Shown in pieces: positions 24,944 to 43,585 of a stretch of 64,000 nt of DNA (position 1 is the stretch's first letter; every line of letters begins with the position of its first letter). Location of the stretch: contig OZ365115.1 in assembly GCA_977030845.1 (NCBI GenBank), positions 5,952,001 to 6,016,000 on the forward strand. The letters run 5' to 3'. This stretch comes from Fimbriosthenelais zetlandica. Lineage: Eukaryota. The notes beneath the pieces were generated by a model. The model was not told the origin of the DNA, searched no databases, and was given only the letters and a program-made list of their open reading frames with translations. Both the position numbers and the translations under genes were made by a program.

Positions 24944-25395
24944 CTAAGTTGCGTTGTATGCTGGTACTTGCAAAAACATAGATGTGAGTGCTGCCACAGA
25001 AGCAGCAAGAAAGAGCCAGAAAAACATCCTGTCTACACATTTGGCCAGAATTTGCCACTCATGTGAGATCCTGGTTTGAATATCAAGGTCACTAGTTTTG
25101 TAAGGTGTTCCAGAGCGTTTACGACTGCAGCGACTCCTACAGGTTAAGGTTTCAGCCTCACTTTGGTTGGAAAGATTGTCTATCTCGATTTCCTGTATTT
25201 TGGTCTCGAGAATGTGGTTCTCTGTATGGGTGACTTTGTTGGAAAGGGCAGTGCGGCCCGATTTACCGATGAAAATTTTCCGTAAGCAGACAGGGACTCG
25301 ATGACCTGAGTCCTTGCGGAGGAATATGTTGGTAACTATGACAGCCATTACCAATGCTATGGAGACCATGAGCATGGTGGTACCAAACAACACCC
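24944..25395 (-). CDS. nAChR exon 6 (terminal): M3, short M3-M4 loop, MA/M4 (HEWQILAKCVDRMFFWLF), stop
   Basis: Acceptor TTTTCTCTAG|GG at 25396/25395 completes the Gly codon. The EW-x-x-LA-x-x-x-DR-x-FFW motif precedes M4. TAG at 24946-24944. Confidence 0.95.
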
Positions 25396-28300
25396 CTAGA
25401 GAAAAGAAGAGAAATGCGTACTTAAAAAATCAGTAACTTAATAATGAGACATGATATTTCAATCATCATTATAAGAGGACTAGTCTATCAATGAAAGTAT
25501 TACATAGTTACACCAGCTTATTGATCTTATATATAAGTCTCTACTTGGGCCAATTTTGCCTCCTATCTTCAAATCGTCTTATGGGGAGAAGTAACTCACC
25601 TAATGCAGGGATGGCGTCTGGCGTGGGTGGCAATGTTTCACCCACAATTAGCAGGAAAACAACAAGGGCCAATAGAATGGTTATTTCTAAGTTCACTTTC
25701 TCACCAGATTCAACTGGCAAGAAAAATCCGAGGAAGGACACAGCGTAGATGAGCAGGCAGGGGAAGATAAGGTTGATGATGTAGAAGAGGCTACGACGAG
25801 TCATGTGGATGGTAAACGTGACATCTGGGTAGGGTTCTATACAACAAGCATAGATCTTCTCATGGCGATCAACCCCGATCCTGTCTACATACCACTCCTG
25901 ATTCTTAGGCGTGTAGTACACAGTGTTGTGTTCGCTAACATTGTACGTTACATTCAGTTTGAACCCGTGGAAGGTCCACGAGATGAAGATGATCTTACAC
26001 TTTTGACGGTCAAAAGGGAAGTGCCTCACGTCCAGGGTACAATAAGTGGTAACTACAGCTGGGAACATCCATAAAACTGACCCATTTGAGGTGACAATAG
26101 CATATGTATCCATGAAGTCCTGAAAACTATCATCCGCACTGAAAAATAAGAACATCATTGTAATGCAGATAGGGAAATATATTGATGGTTATCCAATGAA
26201 GAAAATGTTGCAATAATTTTAATTTGTCAGTAATGAATGATAACGCATGTCAATATAATTTTTCTGCATCAGAGTTATAGGTCAGGTCTACAGAATTTAT
26301 GGAATTTGGTCCAATTTTCTGAACTTTGATTTTACTGTAGACGAGTAATGCATACTTGAGTCTCGACTGGAAAAGTAGGATGTAAAGTTCTTTACGTTCT
26401 GTGCGGATTAATTGTTCTATCTCATTAGCAGATGGCATCGAGATCATAATAGTGAGAATGAGAGAATATGCTGAATGTATTAAAGAAATGGGGATACATC
26501 TCTTTTTTCGCTGAATGTAATTTGCTGCGAGTTAGGCAGATAAGGAAGACATCAAAGGGAGAAGGATTTGTGGACGGGTGTCATTAAATATACATCTATA
26601 TCAAGGCCCTGTCGGACCTGAGATGAAGGCCCTTCAACCCGGCCTCAATAATTGGATATTTAATGCCCTTTTTGTCTGTCCTTGTACAATGCCGAGATCT
26701 GTGATGGGTTCATTTGCATGTATATCAAAACTTTCTAGAAGCCACTTGTGAAATCACTTTGACAAAAGTGTGCATTAAAAAGACGGTTTAGGCCTATGTA
26801 CTAAGTTGTCAGGTGTTGCTAAGAACAAAGTGTTTTAGAAGTTTCTCCCATTAAAAAGGAAATCCACAGCACAGCAATGTTACTGCGTAGTGAACAATGG
26901 GTTTTCTGCTGAAAAGAACTGATACTCACAAGTTATTGATGAAGATATCAGGTCTCCAAATATCCATGGCTGGCACCCATACATGTTCTACCCCGCCATT
27001 TTTGACAGGGTCCCATTTCAAAAACTCATCCTCCCATCTCTGGAATTGAAAAGAAATATTAAGACAATGTGACATACACATGTAGATTATTTCTTTATTG
27101 CATTATTAGAATATTTTTTATCATATATCTGCTTCCCTGACTAAAAACTGAAGAAGGGTCATGTGGTTAACAAATTAAACTTGGGCTATATTATATAGCG
27201 AACCCCAAGTTGTCGTGATAATGGTCCCTGAAGTCTGCAGCCATCCCACTCCTGGGAAGTACACCTATTTTGCCTGTATCTCCCTCTTAGACTCCCCACA
27301 ATGCAGGTTGCCCAGAGCCTTTGAGCAGGGCATGCACACATGATCAACTTCCCTTTTGGATTGTACCTTCCTTCCCGACGGAAATACAGCCTGACAGAGC
27401 ATGGTCTAACTAATCAGCAGCTGTAATGGCGGCTGTAACTGGACCTAAAAGATGCTAGGCTAGTGGCAGGGGGGCTGATACTGACCATGTCCTCCTCTCA
27501 TCACTACTACTAAAGACTACTACTAAGTACCTGTTATATGACATTTTATAAAAGATCTCAAGAAGTATAGCTAAATGTACATGGAATCTAATATAAGACC
27601 TCAAAAATCTTTCCATGGAACTTGAAAAATATTATGCTTGTAGAAGAAAGGTACTTACCAATCTCACAGCTATAAGTGCTTTCAGCGTTTGATACTTTTC
27701 ATTCTGAAAAGACAAAAAAGTGGTTCTTCATTAAGGACTTGTGTTCAGCAAAAATAGCCCGCATGTTTAATCAGTGGCCGAGCATGCAAGGAAGCAGGGA
27801 AACACAATACTGCGAACGAAGCTGCATGAACTCGAGGAACAAACAATCATTCATGAGTCGGGGATCAAATGATTTGACAATCTCAAAAAATAACGTTCAT
27901 CTTGTCTCAAGTTGGGAGTCGCGATTGACTGAACTGAAAAAAAGGCACAGAATGTAGCTCGAGTAAGTTTGACAATGGAATGTGTAGGTTACCGTTGCTA
28001 TTCAAAAGGGCCCACATAAGCCTCAATTTTCCCATCCGCGTAGAATATTAGCAGCTTGGTGCATCACGAGCTCCTGTCATATTTAGTATTTGTATAATAC
28101 TTTTACCATTTCGATATTCGGGAAATAAGTATCCTTATTTTGAATTAAATTTTGGCATTTCTCATGCAGAGGGGGGAAGCATTACAGAAAAGCATTGTTA
28201 AAGGTGTTTTAGGAAGTATACTACTATTCGTTGGTGAACGGGAAAACAATTGTTTAACTGCAACTGTTCTCATGCATGCTCTAACTGGCATTTGTTCCAA

Positions 28301-37300: not shown

Positions 37301-40300
37301 ATAAAATACAATAACTGGATATCGGTGGGGAACTATAAAATGTGATTCACTTTTCTTCTGTCAAGGATATATACCGGTAATAATACACATAATACAATGC
37401 CATTTTTTCTGTCGAATGTGATTAAAGTATCTCATGAGAATATTCAGATATTCATCCTTCATCAGTTGCGTTTCTTTGACATGACTTGCTCTAAAGTTTC
37501 AAAAGTTTCCAAGCAGAAATCGGCCAAAAACTTTAAGCTGTCCCATTGTCACTGTACCTATACAATACCCACCGCACCCCTCATATTAATGTACACATTC
37601 CTAGGGCTTACCATACCACTCTGATATAAGCAACGCCATCTATACTGTATATAAGTCGGTTAGTCAATTACAGTGTCCATATCCCTATAACATTCCCAGT
37701 CCCTATATGTAAAGGGCCTTGTGAACTATTTAAGTCTCCAAAGTATAGGCCTATATAATATTATAGAAGGAGTCCCAAATTATGGGACTGCATGTAGGCC
37801 TATACAGTTAATGTGATAGAATATTCTCTGGGCAAACGATGTTGCTTTTATTGACTACCGGTAGGCTTCTGATTTTGATCACTTTATGCCAGATTGTTAT
37901 GATTATTCAGGGGATACGAAAATATTCAACACTCGTATCATGAACATTCGGCAGGACAGAACAACTTTGTTTTAGCTTGCAGATGGAACCCCTATTTGAT
38001 TTTAAACAAATTATCTCTGAAGTAATGTAAAATATAGGCCTTAAGTGTGAAGGCGCTGAAGAGAAAGATCATGAAATTCAATGAGAAAATTGGTCTGGCC
38101 ATGAATAAATGGCGAATAGATGATAGCAGTCACTGTGGATCCATGAACCACTGGCTGGACAAGTAGGGGAGACGATAAAGGGGCAGACGAGCAAGGATTC
38201 TCTCTACACATATCAGTATGCATCAATAGTAATTATTCTCTAAGTGATAAATGGAAACCACAGGGTTCTTGATGTTTTGATAAGTGCTCTTTCATAGCTG
38301 TGACGAGGAATGCAGGTGTAATCTCAATGTTGGGATATTCAGTGAGCAGTGCTGAGTGGTAATCATGGACAAGTGGCAATAGAAGGACCGTACAGTTTTT
38401 ATCCAAGCCTGAAATGGTTGTGAATGTTTGTTCACCAGTAAAAGTGACTCCATGTAGCCTAGGTAGGCCTACCATGTCCCAAACTTTCCCCAACAAAGCA
38501 AACGAGACACATAGCCTAACGTTAGTCAAAATATTTTGAAAATACCGTGCCGTAATTTAGGCCATATTTGTTCTGCCATTTGAATATTTATCAGAGTCAC
38601 AGATGACCTGATTTCACTGCTTCATGTGTTTGTTTCATTTGGCGGGAAAGTGGCACTGAATTGTCACTTTCCAACGGCCTCTCCCCGACTGCCACTTGAC
38701 ACGACGTCGCGTTGTTAACGACGACGACGTGTATCCAGGATACGTCCCAGACAGCCATTTCTTCACACGCAGCCAGGGATCTCTCTACTCCGCCATTTCC
38801 GCCCTTGGCTTATAGGCCTAGATTTAATAGATTTCTAAATTAAGGTCCTCTGCCAGTCTGATGAACGATTAGGCCTATAGACTATAGCAGCAAACTTATG
38901 CAAAGGTTACCAATGTGCATGTTCTTTCTGACCCTAGCATGGCAGACCTGTTGACTGAGACGTCATGCAGTCTGAATGGTCAGTCTATAACCGACAGCTA
39001 AGGAAACACTTGATGACCGTGACCTTTCTTTTGGCATTTTCAAATATTACTGTGGAGAGTCTGAGGAGAATATTTCAGAAAGAGAAAATTGTGACTACAT
39101 GTAAAAGTGTCGTCTATTCCTCGGTTTGTCACAGATTAAAGTTCAAAGAAGGGTCCTATAGTAGACCTATAGTAGACCTATCAGGCTCAGCAGCCCGTCT
39201 CAACAAATTGCAGATAGTCAGATAGACTGGGATTATTTAAAAGAGCATCCATATTGTTTTATGATATTATTCTAGTATGCCAGACATTTAAAGCCCACCT
39301 AATTATCTGACTCTCTCACATTCGTCACATTGAATATCTCTACCAACATTTTCCAATTTTGTAGGCCTATTGAACATTAAAAGGTCATATGATCAACACA
39401 ATTAATGAAAAGTGGTCACCTACTCAATGATCCATTTATTGATTAATGAGCACGTTTGATCACTCCCTTCATAATGAGCAGAGGCTTCAACTGTCTGGAT
39501 CCTCTTAAAGAAGCCTTTTCAAGGACTGAGAGGATTTGAATAACTTGGAGTAGCCTATTACTGCAGAGTGCTACTTTCTAACCATTCAAAATCACGAGTC
39601 CTCGATGCCGGACAACTTGATACATTAATTTGACGCTTCGTCCAATAATCGGTTTACTTTTTCAAATTGAAATTGCTATTCATTTTCACAGTGTGCTCAG
39701 GTCGCCGACCCCACCTCTTCTTCCATTCTCATGTATAGTGTTTGGTACCAATGTTAAGTGGCCAAATGCAGTTGCCCAATAGGGCCTACATGGCAATGTT
39801 AAGAACCTTCCATTTAGCAGTTTACTGTCTCTGTTCCACCAATCGATCGGCGGGTAGGACCGGAAGGGATTCTCGGTGGGCGGGCACTTTGGGTTTATTG
39901 ATCCGTCAACAAGGCCATGTTACAATAGGAGATAAAAGGGGCGATAAAGGGGCAATGTTGACACTGACGAGAAACAATTTAGGAATGAGCTTACTCGGGT
40001 AGTCAGGGAAATGGTAAACCTCTAGAGGATTACATTTTATGAGTAATGTAAACGGTTTACCGTTAGGTATATTGGCACATGAAATAGGACATTGATAGTA
40101 TAATTAAATTCTTGATAATATATTTGTTGCCCACAGTGACTGTTGTATAATGCTGATATGTCCGCCAAAAGGTTCTTGCATAAAAATATATATGAGTGGA
40201 AATTAACTAAATCTTGACCATTTTATTCCAATTAGTGAGGCTTTGAGAAAAAAAAGTGAATGAATAATGAGATTTTACCGTATCTAGGATATGGTAGAGT

Positions 40301-43300
40301 GACATCCCAACATAAAGATCTGTTGTTGTAGAGTCATTACGAACTGGCCTTGTCGTCTTATCATAGTAACGATCCCTTAACAACTTCCGCTTAATCTGGT
40401 ACTCAAATGAGTAGTCTTTTTGCCGGTATCTTCGACTATCGCCGGTTGTCACTTTCATATCCTTGCGCTTTTTGCCACGTTTAGTCCGACTTAGCAGGGA
40501 CTCACTATCATCCTCCTCATCCTGGGACACAGGGGCATGATCAAGTATAGTGTACTCGGTTCCGTTAATTTCTATAATATTTTCTGATGTGTAGGTGACC
40601 ACAGTCGGTGTGGGGGTCACAACTTCCGGCCTCCTGCCATCACCTTGCGGTACAGTAGTGCCCTCTGTGGGCTCTTGTCTGAAGTCTTTGCCGGAAGTGA
40701 CGTGAAGGTCATTGTATGGGGATTTCCGCTGGACGTCTTTTGTAGGAACAGGCTGGTGAGCCTTGCTGAAGGGCGTCGAGCTTGGGGCTGGGGTCCGCCG
40801 GAGGTAGTGGCGAGTGGGTAGTGGTTGCTTGGGTGCCTTTGTGCCTTCAGGTGATGGGGTGGTTGTTTCGGGCATTTTACTCGGTGGTAATGTGGTTGAA
40901 TGGAGATCACTTGAAACACCCGATACTGAAAGAAAACAGAAGTGAGAGGTCTCATGAGACGCAGGTTCATCTGTCATGCAATATTAAATGTGCGTAGGGA
41001 CAAATCTGCTGGAGTTTCAGCTGAAAGAATAGTTTGGTATTATAAAAAGTTCAAAGAATAGCTTGTGCTATACCAGTATTGAAAGAACATGCAGCACACA
41101 AGTAGCCTACAAAAGACAGATCATGGACAACCAAAGAAAGTCCTCCTCCAATGACAAATCTATAAGGCAAAGTCAGAAACAGAATTATGTGACTCAATGC
41201 GTGGGGATGAATGGATAAAATCCCAAAAGCAAAGCGAAGTTAATTTCTAGCAAAATTCAACCTGCTGAAGAAGAGAGCAGATAAAAATAAGTTTAAGGAT
41301 CCACCATGGATTATAATGATGATGTAAATTATCATTACATTCATGATGTAATTGTCAGCTCTACAGTTTTTTTAATGCTGATCATGTCACTCAGTAGCCT
41401 GCTCAACACTTTCCACCACCTCATTAATTCTGATACCAACACAAACTTTTTTCTGGCAATTCTTTGGCACACTACACATTGGCAAGTTCTCCTGAAAATA
41501 ATCTCTATGATGTATGGGATATTTTCGTGACTGTGATTGAAGATTCCGATTTCTAGTTCACCATGTTTGATATAATACATATTATGCATTCTGTTCCAGT
41601 GGTGTCCTCCTTAAAAGACACTGATAGAGAAAACCATTTCTCCACTGATAAAAGAAAAGGAAAATGGATGGGAAGAGTTTAGTATATACATGTATAGGCT
41701 ACCCTCTTAGGACTGAATGATGGGCAAAAGTTTGATCTACATCACATGAATCCTAGTTACCGTCCACCCCGTGCCCCGGTAGGCTTTATGGATCCTCAAT
41801 CATCACTTATACATTAAAGATGAAGAATTCCCTGTCACTATCTGACGAAAAGATGTTTTAAACCCACCACTAGAAACTATAGCCTGGGTCGATTAATTCG
41901 CCAACAAATCGATTAAAGCCGGCTATTTGAGCAGCCATGTCTCTGGGGACCCTATTCTCCACGCGCCGCTTACCGGAAGACGATGTAGCTACATCCGGGA
42001 CATGACGATGGTGCTCAATGATATGCGCTAACCTTTGAACCACATCACTTTAGAGGCAGACTATGGTTCACTGGAGCATATCGCAGCTGTCGGCAGAGAT
42101 CAAAAGAAGCCAAGGGAGGCGATAGATCATCGCTGTCAGCATCAAGTTTTGACACTGTTTCATATCCATCTACCCATTCAGAAAGTTTGTCCCTCGCAGA
42201 CAAAGACTGTCCAATCTTGCATTTTTTTGGAATGGGCAAGGCCTAATATTAAATATTTCTCTTGGTATTTATCTTTAATGACATTATCGTATTGCAAAAG
42301 GAACATCATCTTTTTCTTCTGAGGACTTGCATTAATGTTTTAATTCGGCTAAATGAAACCTAGAGGGAGACCTACAGGAACACAATATTTGGTCTGAAAT
42401 TAATGAATAAAGGTTTTGTATGCTTGGCATTCATAAAATGCCATAGGGCCCTTGCCTGATGGAATCAATTATGTAAATGTGCGTAACAATATGTATGCAT
42501 GAAAAATAATCTTGTAAGCGAGTTTTTGACCTCCGAACCTTATGTAAAACTTCATCAAGTCTTTTGTAAAAGCTTTGCAGGGGGACAACTGAGAGACTTA
42601 CTTTCTATGGGGAAATATGAGATGTAGCATTGTGCAATGTGCGGAATCTTATAATAAATGTCTTATAAGCTTCGTTGATTAGCTTTACAGCAAGCTATGG
42701 CCCAACTTTTCCTTCATGGAAAGATTATCATATTGATATTGCCATCATTTCCGCCGCTGGGTTGTTTGCTCAAATTGAAATGTCCTTTTCACCTGAGGCA
42801 TTGAGAGGAAGATATTCGCCATGTGAAATTATGAAATGGATGCAAGAATCAAGACGGAATGAAAGTTAGGCTACATGTCCTTTCTCTGAAATATGAAAAG
42901 TATTGGGGAATAGATATTTCTGACACCGAAATTACTTCATTCATAACGATAGATCTCATTGCCTTTAGGCTTAAGGAGGTTTTCTTACTTTTCCCAAAAT
43001 TGATTAACTTTTAATCTGTTTTGAATAAAGAAGATGGATGATGGAACATGGTAGCACGAATCTGCGCTTAAAAGTATGGTAAAGGTGTGATAAATTGATA
43101 TTTCCATAAACAATTTTTGCAAGGTGATCAGTATATTGTTTGTGGGATATTCTAGTCCTACAGTAGCATGCAAATCATATTCCTATTATTTATCGTCATA
43201 TTCACCCCATAATGTTCAAAGGCAGCAATCATTCCGGGCACATATCCACCCACTACCAACCTTCATACCTCCACCAATACACCAGTCCCCTCCCCAGCCA

Positions 43301-43585
43301 GTCACGCCCCTGCCAACCTCTGTTGACAGGCTGCTGTTCTCAGCATTATTTTCTCTATTAATAATAGTCTTATCCTACTATTTAGGGAAGTATCAATCGA
43401 GAGTACAAAGGCAATGTTCAGAACACAAACAAGCATATAGCAAATCATTGTTTGATCAATCAATGATATTGATGAATCGCCTCGAAAAGCAAGGACTAAA
43501 TATTTCTACGTCAATTTATCCGTGTAATTTTACCTACAACTAATAGAAATATATGAAGGCAGGTGTTGGAGGTAATGGGGGACAT
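24944..43585 (-). CDS. Nicotinic acetylcholine receptor alpha-type subunit, alpha9/alpha10-like (pentameric Cys-loop cation channel), 6 coding exons, 614 aa, with an atypical N-terminal pro-/mucin-like extension
   Basis: Exons of 52+647+45+110+539+452 = 1845 nt form one open frame from ATG (43585) to TAG (24946-24944). All introns are GT-AG with phases 1,0,0,2,1. Hallmarks: signal peptide, W-x-PDI, 15-residue Cys-loop CTLDVRHFPFDRQKC, loop B SWT, loop C YACCIEPY (vicinal Cys, alpha type), M1-M4, GEK before M2. The 45+110 nt and 539 nt exons match the CHRNA9 layout as I recall it (155 and 533 nt). Symbol left blank because orthology was not tested. Confidence 0.95.
25600..26138 (-). CDS. nAChR exon 5 (539 nt): Cys-loop, loops B and C, M1, M2, M2-M3 linker
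   Basis: Acceptor CTTATTTTTCAG|T (26139/26138), donor TTA G|GTGAGT (25600/25599). Cys-loop codons 26041-25997, vicinal TGT TGT 25846-25841, M2 about 25705-25637. Confidence 0.97.
26930..27039 (-). CDS. nAChR exon 4 (110 nt, phase 0-2): RWEDEFLKWDPVKNGGVEHVWVPAMDIWRPDIFINN(F) (loop A)
   Basis: TTTCTTTTCAATTCCAG|AGA...AAC TT|GTGAGT. This is the conserved 110-nt nAChR exon with W-x-D-x-x-L-x-W-x-P and IW-x-PDI motifs. Confidence 0.95.
27659..27703 (-). CDS. nAChR exon 3 (45 nt, phase 0-0): NEKYQTLKALIAVRL (beta2, loop D)
   Basis: CTTTTTTGTCTTTTCAG|AAT...TTG|GTAAGT. It has the same length as, and aligns without gaps to, the conserved 45-nt DEKNQVLTTNIWLQM exon of CHRNA7. Confidence 0.93.
31636..31731. 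repeat. Small nested inverted repeat (foldback), possible MITE core
   Basis: ACACCCATC-GA-GATGGGTGT (31671-31690) is flanked almost symmetrically by GGAAGTGAGT (31636-31645) and ACTCACTTCC (31722-31731). Confidence 0.55.
35684..35931. promoter_or_regulatory. Candidate intronic promoter/enhancer: two CCAAT boxes and three CACGTG E-boxes
   Basis: AGCCAATCA (CCAAT 35687-35691), CACGTG 35726-35731, CCAAT 35827-35831, CACGTG 35863-35868 and 35926-35931, in a locally CpG-richer stretch. Motif evidence only. Confidence 0.35.
40279..40925 (-). CDS. nAChR exon 2 (647 nt): end of signal peptide, S/T/P-rich extension, RTKR site, helix alpha1 and beta1 of the ligand-binding domain
   Basis: Acceptor TTTTCTTTCAG|TA at 40926/40925, donor ACG|GTAAAA at 40279/40278. 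It ends in EYQIKRKLLRDRYYDKTTRPVRNDSTTTDLYVGMSLYHILDT, the canonical helix / RPV / beta1 segment of nAChRs. Confidence 0.9.
43534..43585 (-). CDS. nAChR exon 1 (coding part): start codon and signal peptide MSPITSNTCLHIFLLVV(V)
   Basis: Minus strand reads AAC ATG TCC...GTT GTA G|GTAAAA: A at -3, 52 nt, phase-1 donor matching the phase-1 acceptor of exon 2. The spliced product MSPITSNTCLHIFLLVVVSGVSS-DLH has a hydrophobic core and small residues at -3/-1. Confidence 0.75.

Follow-up and report, generated by a model that had tools for sequence, protein, structure and literature searches.

The stretch of DNA analysed here, hereafter the window, comprises 64,000 nucleotides of the Fimbriosthenelais zetlandica contig OZ365115.1 (assembly GCA_977030845.1, positions 5,952,001 to 6,016,000), and its minus strand carries, at about 43585-24944, an intact six-exon gene for a Cys-loop receptor subunit whose assembled model is 614 residues long. 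Our main finding is that the long segment preceding the ligand-binding domain (LBD) of this subunit is, judged from its sequence and those of its relatives, genuine translated coding sequence under selection and a trait of the lineage, and that among the sequences sharing its junction the only invariant columns upstream of helix alpha1 are the R, K and R of a furin consensus, R-x-K-R. We put at roughly 45% the probability that a furin-type proprotein convertase cuts the subunit after this motif, at R167, in the late secretory pathway.

The N-terminal extension and its R-x-K-R junction

The original prediction, made from the window's letters, proposed a 'pro-receptor', that is, a nicotinic-type subunit carrying a mucin-like N-terminal segment to be removed by furin-type cleavage. 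The features on which it drew are all confirmed in the translation: 144 residues (D24-R167) that include no Cys and 55 Ser, Thr and Pro, one NGT sequon, the acidic patch QDEEDDSES, the RTKR motif, and a basic linker with RRYR leading into helix alpha1. Its order, a pre-pro-like one typical of an annelid subgroup, and what follows it are these:

40600..40908, minus strand: Ser/Thr/Pro-rich part D24-V126, by composition; predicted local distance difference test (pLDDT) about 50; poorly conserved, kept open in the homologue
40549..40599, minus strand: module V127-T143, VTYTSENIIEINGTEYT; predicted three short beta strands; carries the NGT sequon
40498..40524, minus strand: acidic patch Q152-S160, QDEEDDSES, by charge count and composition
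40477..40488, minus strand: R164-T-K-R167, furin consensus by motif, at the acidic-to-basic junction; P1' is Gly
40414..40476, minus strand: polybasic linker G168-D188, GKKRKDMKVTTGDSRRYRQKD; contains R182-R-Y-R185
40279..40413, minus strand: helix alpha1 and strand beta1, Y189-T233, YSFEYQIKRKLL...YDKTTRPVRNDSTTTDLYVGMSLYHILDT; weak Pfam match, predicted helix, 97 homologues

With the codon of D24 at 40908-40906 on the minus strand, D24-R167 occupies 40908-40477. Its 22 Thr, 20 Pro and 13 Ser make up 38% of the residues, as against 18% elsewhere in the protein, the sequon is N138-G-T (40566-40558), and the net charge passes from -7 over the 15 residues D146-S160 to +9 over R164-D188. RTKR is the sole R-x-[KR]-R in the whole model. 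Tandem repeats were not found in exon 2, although the relatives P0015 and P0018 do carry repeats.

D24-V126 is predicted to be mucin-like, that is, Ser/Thr/Pro-rich and disordered. AlphaFold2, run on exon 2 from an alignment of 32 sequences, gave a pLDDT of about 50 and no secondary structure across the extension except at V127-T143, where three strands (VTY, IIEI and TEYT, at exon-2 residues 109-111, 116-119 and 122-125) were predicted with pLDDT 74-83; a helix was predicted at protein residues 191-202, corresponding to alpha1. Around RTKR (exon-2 residues 130-170) pLDDT was again about 50 without secondary structure, so that the motif is predicted to lie in a flexible, exposed stretch.

An exhaustive HMMER search with exon 2 returned 97 proteins, nearly all of them short open reading frame (ORF) calls ending in ...GMSLYHILDTV, and most represent the exon read through into its intron and called as a single-exon ORF. 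At least 70 residues precede helix alpha1 in 48 of the 97; strong acidic and strong basic blocks occur together in 23 of these 48, with the acidic block first in 21 of the 23. An R-x-[KR]-R motif is present in 13 of the 48 long members, compared with 3.0 +/- 1.7 after shuffling (none of 1000 shuffles reached 13), an excess that measures conservation rather than independent events because the sequences are related.

The junction sorts these long members into two groups. Group A, which spans seven or more assemblies or samples, consists of the window protein and P0001, P0002, P0015, P0020, P0033, P0034, P0036, P0047, P0048 and P0050, and its junction reads L-S-R-x-K-R with lysine or arginine immediately after. 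Only the R, K and R of the motif are invariant across these 11 sequences upstream of alpha1; the preceding Ser is nearly so, and the rest of the extension is variable. The hairpin module with its sequon is conserved in P0001 (YTSEKTVEINGTAYTIVD) and P0002 (YTPGGTMQINGTQYIVVD). Word-indexed searches found no full-length group A transcripts or annotated proteins, and cluster look-ups gave one named member. Group B is larger and includes the annotated GenBank protein KAK2168105.1 of Paralvinella palmiformis. It shares with the window gene the exon plan and the order of variable part, acidic part, junction motif, K/R run and alpha1, and differs in having (D/R)MQxDF where the window has S-R-x-K-R; a few residues later comes a K/R run with recurrent KKNR. 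In a poorly resolved tree of 46 alpha1-beta1 columns, group A is split over three or more positions, and the window sequence and P0001 lie nearer to group B; for this reason the motif is either ancestral and selectively kept or was gained more than once.

Two side observations concern the same region. Among family members P0003-P0024, the group B relatives have (D/R)MQxDF conserved between the acidic block and the K/R run, and KKNR recurs in that run. In addition, tyrosines within Asp/Glu runs (DEEYDDDF, EDEYETDD) occur in P0009, P0017, P0019, P0033, P0036, P0039 and P0048; such tyrosines resemble tyrosine-sulfation sites, and there are none in the acidic patch of the window protein.

Coding status of the extension and its candidate signal peptide

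The open frame that contains the extension, at 258 codons, is longer than any other in the six frames read across the window. With stops as frequent as they are in the window (0.057 per codon), 170 codons without one have a probability of about 5e-5, and the G+C content of the extension segment is 0.53, compared with 0.38-0.40 in the flanking introns. The nearest homologue, P0001, sits on two haplotig-like contigs (L001 and L002) of European Nucleotide Archive (ENA) assembly ERZ25767047. In L001 a phase-1 acceptor stands at the equivalent place, with a stop seven codons upstream and no ATG, which makes an upstream exon obligatory there. The L001 extension is open for about 170 residues; the equivalent of the N-terminal 100 or so codons is open yet not alignable, and over the C-terminal half protein identity with the window is about 50%, with differences of 0.39, 0.32 and 0.61 at codon positions 1, 2 and 3. 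The parts conserved with P0001 are YTSE..vEINGT.YTI.D, the acidic run and L.SR.KR.KKR. We used differences per codon position in place of the ratio of nonsynonymous to synonymous substitution rates (dN/dS), which is not meaningful for this pair because the DNA aligns over alpha1-beta1 only (71%) and synonymous sites are saturated, third codon positions differing by 0.61-0.72.

Other relatives point in the same direction. A phase-1 acceptor within the signal-peptide coding region recurs in L001, L005 and L007, and L007, from a group A relative (ENA ERZ21781341), has all of the downstream exons in order. Another relative supplied L006, a spliced transcript contig of 2.2 kb (Logan SRR23076782); it encodes 590 residues, in which a signal-like N-terminus and an extension of about 85 residues rich in Ser, Thr, Pro and Lys (SSSSTTTTPPPPPPP) precede alpha1 and the junction to exon 3 (HILDT|NEKFQ). 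The annotated model KAK2168105.1 also includes such an extension.

Among the outcomes that, by the original prediction, would count against it were these three: transcripts skipping the extension through an internal acceptor, orthologues with no open extension, and loss of RTKR in relatives. Instead, no internal AG with a credible pyrimidine tract and a frame allowing the extension to be skipped was found in exon 2, the extension of the L001 homologue is open and partly conserved, and R, K and R are invariant in all 11 group A sequences. It is on these three grounds that the furin-site reading survives.

The signal peptide is less firmly placed. Candidate exon 1 is the best combination of an ATG, a hydrophobic core and a phase-1 donor in the 23 kb upstream; it joins exon 2 in frame, and the n- and h-regions of a signal peptide would come from it. 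An in-frame ATG at 40977 leaves the residue numbering unchanged, but the peptide that begins there (MTDEPASHETSHFCFLSV...) does not look like a signal peptide. The proposed cleavage between S23 and D24 depends on this candidate exon, for which neither L001 nor L007 yielded a counterpart. Family topology places the N-terminus outside the cell, and the lumenal location of RTKR itself rests on the signal peptide of candidate exon 1.

Signal-like N-termini were seen in the L006 transcript and in the ORFs P0009 and P0012, in the latter two apparently within the same exon. P0015, with a hydrophobic N-terminus (MIIFISVFAV...), had looked like a further case of a same-exon signal peptide and was rejected, since this N-terminus is a translated polypyrimidine tract with a TTG 'start' (L005:100-200); the signal-peptide evidence from relatives is accordingly limited to P0009, P0012 and L006. 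More generally, prokaryote-style ORF callers run on eukaryotic contigs turn the polypyrimidine tracts of acceptors into fake signal-like N-termini. A 39-nucleotide match between the window (42069-42107) and L001 (8470-8508; 82%) was likewise rejected as an exon: at each locus it lies within opposite-strand ORFs, some 1.1-1.2 kb before exon 2 begins, and it probably stems from a repeat or transposon fragment that the two have in common.

Gene model, receptor identity and relatives

The six exons give an in-frame coding sequence of 1845 nucleotides with AG/GT at every junction:

43534..43585, minus strand: exon 1, candidate; ATG plus 17 codons plus 1 nucleotide, MSPITSNTCLHIFLLVV; donor TAG|gtaaaa, phase 1
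40279..40925, minus strand: exon 2, 647 nucleotides; signal-peptide tail, extension, basic linker, helix alpha1 and strand beta1; acceptor ttctgttttctttcag|TA (phase 1, 16/18 pyrimidines), donor ACG|gtaaaa (phase 0)
27659..27703, minus strand: exon 3, 45 nucleotides, NEKYQTLKALIAVRL, with the loop D position; also in L007 and transcript L006
26930..27039, minus strand: exon 4, RWEDEFLKWDP...IWRPDIFINN, with loop A; Pfam Neur_chan_LBD E=4.2e-9
25600..26138, minus strand: exon 5, the remaining LBD with Cys-loop (C-x13-C) and loop C YACC, then transmembrane helices TM1 and TM2
24944..25395, minus strand: exon 6, TM3, short intracellular loop, TM4 and stop codon

Matches to Neur_chan_LBD (PF02931) were obtained for exon 5 (E=1.5e-25) and exon 4, and weakly for exon 2 (E=0.0086, profile positions 2-39), and those to Neur_chan_memb (PF02932) in exon 5 (E=3.8e-15) and exon 6 (E=2.1e-12) indicate a four-helix transmembrane domain. 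Exon 5 encodes the Cys-loop CTLDVRHFPFDRQKC and the vicinal Cys pair of loop C (YACC), and a cation-type GEK ring precedes TM2. The nearest solved structure is the human alpha7 nicotinic acetylcholine receptor (nAChR; E=2.4e-46 on exon 5); the Alvinella 'Alpo' receptors were considered as nearest solved relatives and ruled out, alpha7 being far closer. From these features the product is an alpha7-like, probably cation-selective Cys-loop subunit. It resembles alpha7 and alpha9-10 nAChRs in its LBD and transmembrane domains, Cys-loop, YACC, GEK, four TM helices and the 45-nucleotide exon 3 typical of nAChR genes, and departs from alpha7 in some 165 extra residues between signal peptide and alpha1, a short intracellular loop, and changes in loops A and D.

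By inspection, the aromatic box is incomplete: Asn replaces the loop A Tyr (WRPDIFINN) and Ala the loop D Trp (LIAVRL), with the loop B Trp and loop C Tyr residues retained in the model. The subunit is therefore best described as nAChR-like by homology rather than as known to be gated by acetylcholine (ACh). The TM3-TM4 loop, in 24944-25395, is about 90 residues long and has a basic Cys/Ser/Arg-rich stretch, CRSRCSRKRSG. No paralogues or repeats of the extension were found within the window. The TM1-TM2 region is 94% identical to that of L007, a paralogue or orthologue in another assembly. L007 also carries a Cys-loop LBD exon twice in tandem (L007:16773-17024 and L007:17577-17816; 68% and 86% identical to window residues 286-365); the two copies resemble mutually exclusive alternative exons, and their counterpart in the window is one undivided, unduplicated exon (26138-25600).

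Sequence comparison places the gene in a spiralian clade marked by ...SLYHILDT|NEK.QT... and described as 'alpha-9/alpha-10-like', with members in Owenia fusiformis, Lineus longissimus, Tubulanus polymorphus, Lingula anatina, Capitella, Helobdella and Macrostomum. With P0100, a Paralvinella family member, as query, the relatives from Owenia, Lineus, Tubulanus and Lingula were 57-62% identical. The window gene and this clade have in common SNEY.IK, YDK.SRPV, SLYHILDT|NEK.QT and the lost loop D Trp. Loss of this Trp must be old and stable, since it is common to relatives of other phyla (Owenia, Lineus, Tubulanus, Lingula), and because the change is common to its members the whole clade may not be gated by ACh. 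What the clade members do not share is the extension: their N-termini are short (0-65 residues past the signal peptide), with neither mucin-like nor acidic parts and no S-R-x-K-R. Basic linkers do precede alpha1 in Tubulanus (GSRRLNRGGRRGRGE), Lineus (RRQLPKGRKRKQ) and Owenia (KMKKKSSKKFRK). The polybasic linker is thus older than the acidic and mucin-like part, given that several short-N-terminus relatives in other spiralian phyla have it.

Proposed processing of the subunit and its alternatives

We favour convertase cleavage after R167 because an exposed, invariant, lumenal R-x-K-R is usually cut and because selection here fixes exactly P4, P2 and P1 of the site. Such a cut would detach the mucin-like and acidic piece and would leave the mature subunit with a polybasic tail of about 20 residues at the top of the extracellular domain. 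Perhaps the acidic piece would neutralise or mask this tail during folding, assembly and transport, a role that we model on the anionic pro-pieces of cationic mature peptides, and the tail, once exposed, could attach to heparan sulphate, matrix or other anionic partners and so serve in placement or clustering. The original prediction further envisaged O-glycosylation of the segment and a shielding of the vestibule or the binding sites, both of them hypothetical. A bioactive released fragment, as with the sortilin propeptide, is possible by analogy. The least supported step is control of gating by cleavage in the manner of ENaC, an analogy that we consider improbable for this subunit.

The pro-receptor idea therefore retains its coding extension, its conserved R-x-K-R and its predicted disordered acidic-to-basic junction, and several points weigh against it. 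In the larger group B the acidic block likewise comes before the basic one, but the junction is MQxDF and there is no consistent furin consensus; the extension of transcript L006 has neither acidic patch nor R-x-K-R, and the short-N-terminus relatives already possess the basic linker before alpha1. No counterpart of exon 1 was found in 10 kb upstream in L001 or L007. The 11 motif-bearing sequences were chosen by the motif itself, the 46-column tree is too short to establish independent retention of the motif or its number of origins, and most homologues are anonymous ORF fragments, which limits the separation of orthologues from paralogues and the sampling of species. Finally, cleavage and glycosylation of the window subunit, and the expression of its gene, are presumed from genomic sequence.

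The strongest alternative is that the extension stays on, the pentamer bearing a permanent disordered brush of five mucin-like tails, with the acidic and basic blocks forming a charge-patterned tether. RTKR would then be the start of a polybasic, Cardin-Weintraub-like motif that binds glycosaminoglycan or matrix and serves to place or cluster the receptor. The basic linkers of the Tubulanus, Lineus and Owenia relatives, which come without an acidic or mucin-like part, would fit such a tether, as would the KKNR-containing K/R runs that group B retains without a consistent furin consensus and the several group A motifs that continue directly into RRKTKFTKK. Since group B lacks a consistent site and short-N-terminus relatives have the linker, the polybasic stretch may indeed have a function that does not involve cleavage. 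Yet within that stretch only R-x-K-R is invariant and the remaining basic residues drift, and if this were a binding patch, one would not predict that exactly P4, P2 and P1 are fixed together with the preceding Ser/Leu. Moreover, where R-x-K-R lies exposed in a disordered lumenal stretch, convertases generally accept it as a substrate. We regard a permanent brush as a serious rival, somewhat less likely than cleavage.

Drift is a very unlikely alternative. Here the subunit would be one member of a massively expanded family with a partly dismantled ACh site, its extension tolerated low-complexity sequence and its RTKR a leftover. Replacement of the loop A Tyr and loop D Trp and the unalignable N-terminal half of the extension would suit this account, as would the strong expansion of nAChR genes in annelids, to 52-129 genes (PMC6896357). 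Against it stand the six intact exons, the 94% identity of TM1-TM2 to L007, a loop D change that is old, stable and common to other phyla, and the conservation of the hairpin module, sequon and R-x-K-R. Least credible of all is a gene-model artefact, in which the 144 residues are untranslated because the first exon splices near alpha1 or translation starts downstream: exon 1 is a candidate, the ATG at 40977 yields no signal peptide and the gene was modelled from genomic DNA rather than from a transcript, but the frame is the longest of the window and lacks a credible internal acceptor, a homologue has the same acceptor and an open, partly conserved extension, the architecture is shared across the family, a relative's transcript includes the extension, and an R-x-K-R kept among otherwise diverged sequences is hard to explain for untranslated DNA.

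A bolder form of the cleavage reading, which we consider a long shot, is that the receptor stays silent or unplaced for as long as it bears the acidic and mucin-like pro-piece, and that once this is taken off, by a convertase or by an extracellular protease acting at the same site, the new N-terminus, GKKRK..., would act on the receptor itself. This tail might be a tethered ligand for a pocket that lacks the ACh-type aromatics, or perhaps an element that plugs and unplugs an electronegative vestibule. If so, the 'orphan nicotinic' subunits of an entire annelid clade would be protease-gated or self-liganded channels.

Well-studied Cys-loop receptors of vertebrates and insects are mature after signal-peptide removal, and their helix alpha1 is nearly N-terminal. 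The arrangement proposed here has counterparts of logic in unrelated proteins: alpha-defensin precursors place an anionic pro-piece upstream of a cationic peptide with the processing site between them, and PSGL-1 combines a mucin-type, Ser/Thr/Pro-rich N-terminus with a propeptide that is removed by a convertase; the acidic-context tyrosines of several family members add to the likeness. The analogy is one of logic only, as neither protein is an ion channel or related in sequence to the window subunit. In full-text literature searches no account turned up of a Cys-loop or other pentameric channel subunit processed by a convertase, and none of a long conserved pre-pro-like N-terminal region in nicotinic-type subunits. 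A survey of lophotrochozoan nAChRs, the source of the annelid gene counts given above, describes unusual domain combinations and not this extension (PMC6896357).

Among channels, ENaC has furin consensus sites in its extracellular part (PMC9163703, PMC6197857). ENaC is a trimeric DEG/ENaC channel, and what cleavage cuts out there are inhibitory tracts internal to a folded domain, whereas in the window subunit a single site would release a terminal disordered segment. Nearer to the idea of a pro-receptor with a bioactive fragment is sortilin, whose N-terminal propeptide is cut by furin in the late Golgi and whose released peptide is bioactive (PMC6331531). Sortilin differs in being a Vps10p-domain protein rather than a channel, its propeptide is short, without mucin-like or acidic character, and there is no homology.

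If the conserved R-x-K-R is used, this annelid clade would add proteolytic maturation, a mechanism known from ENaC and sortilin, to the biology of pentameric channels. The clade would also provide natural constructs that bear on how assembly, clustering or gating respond to a long tail on top of the extracellular domain. The finding also gives a handle on a large, unstudied spiralian group of 'orphan' nicotinic-like subunits.

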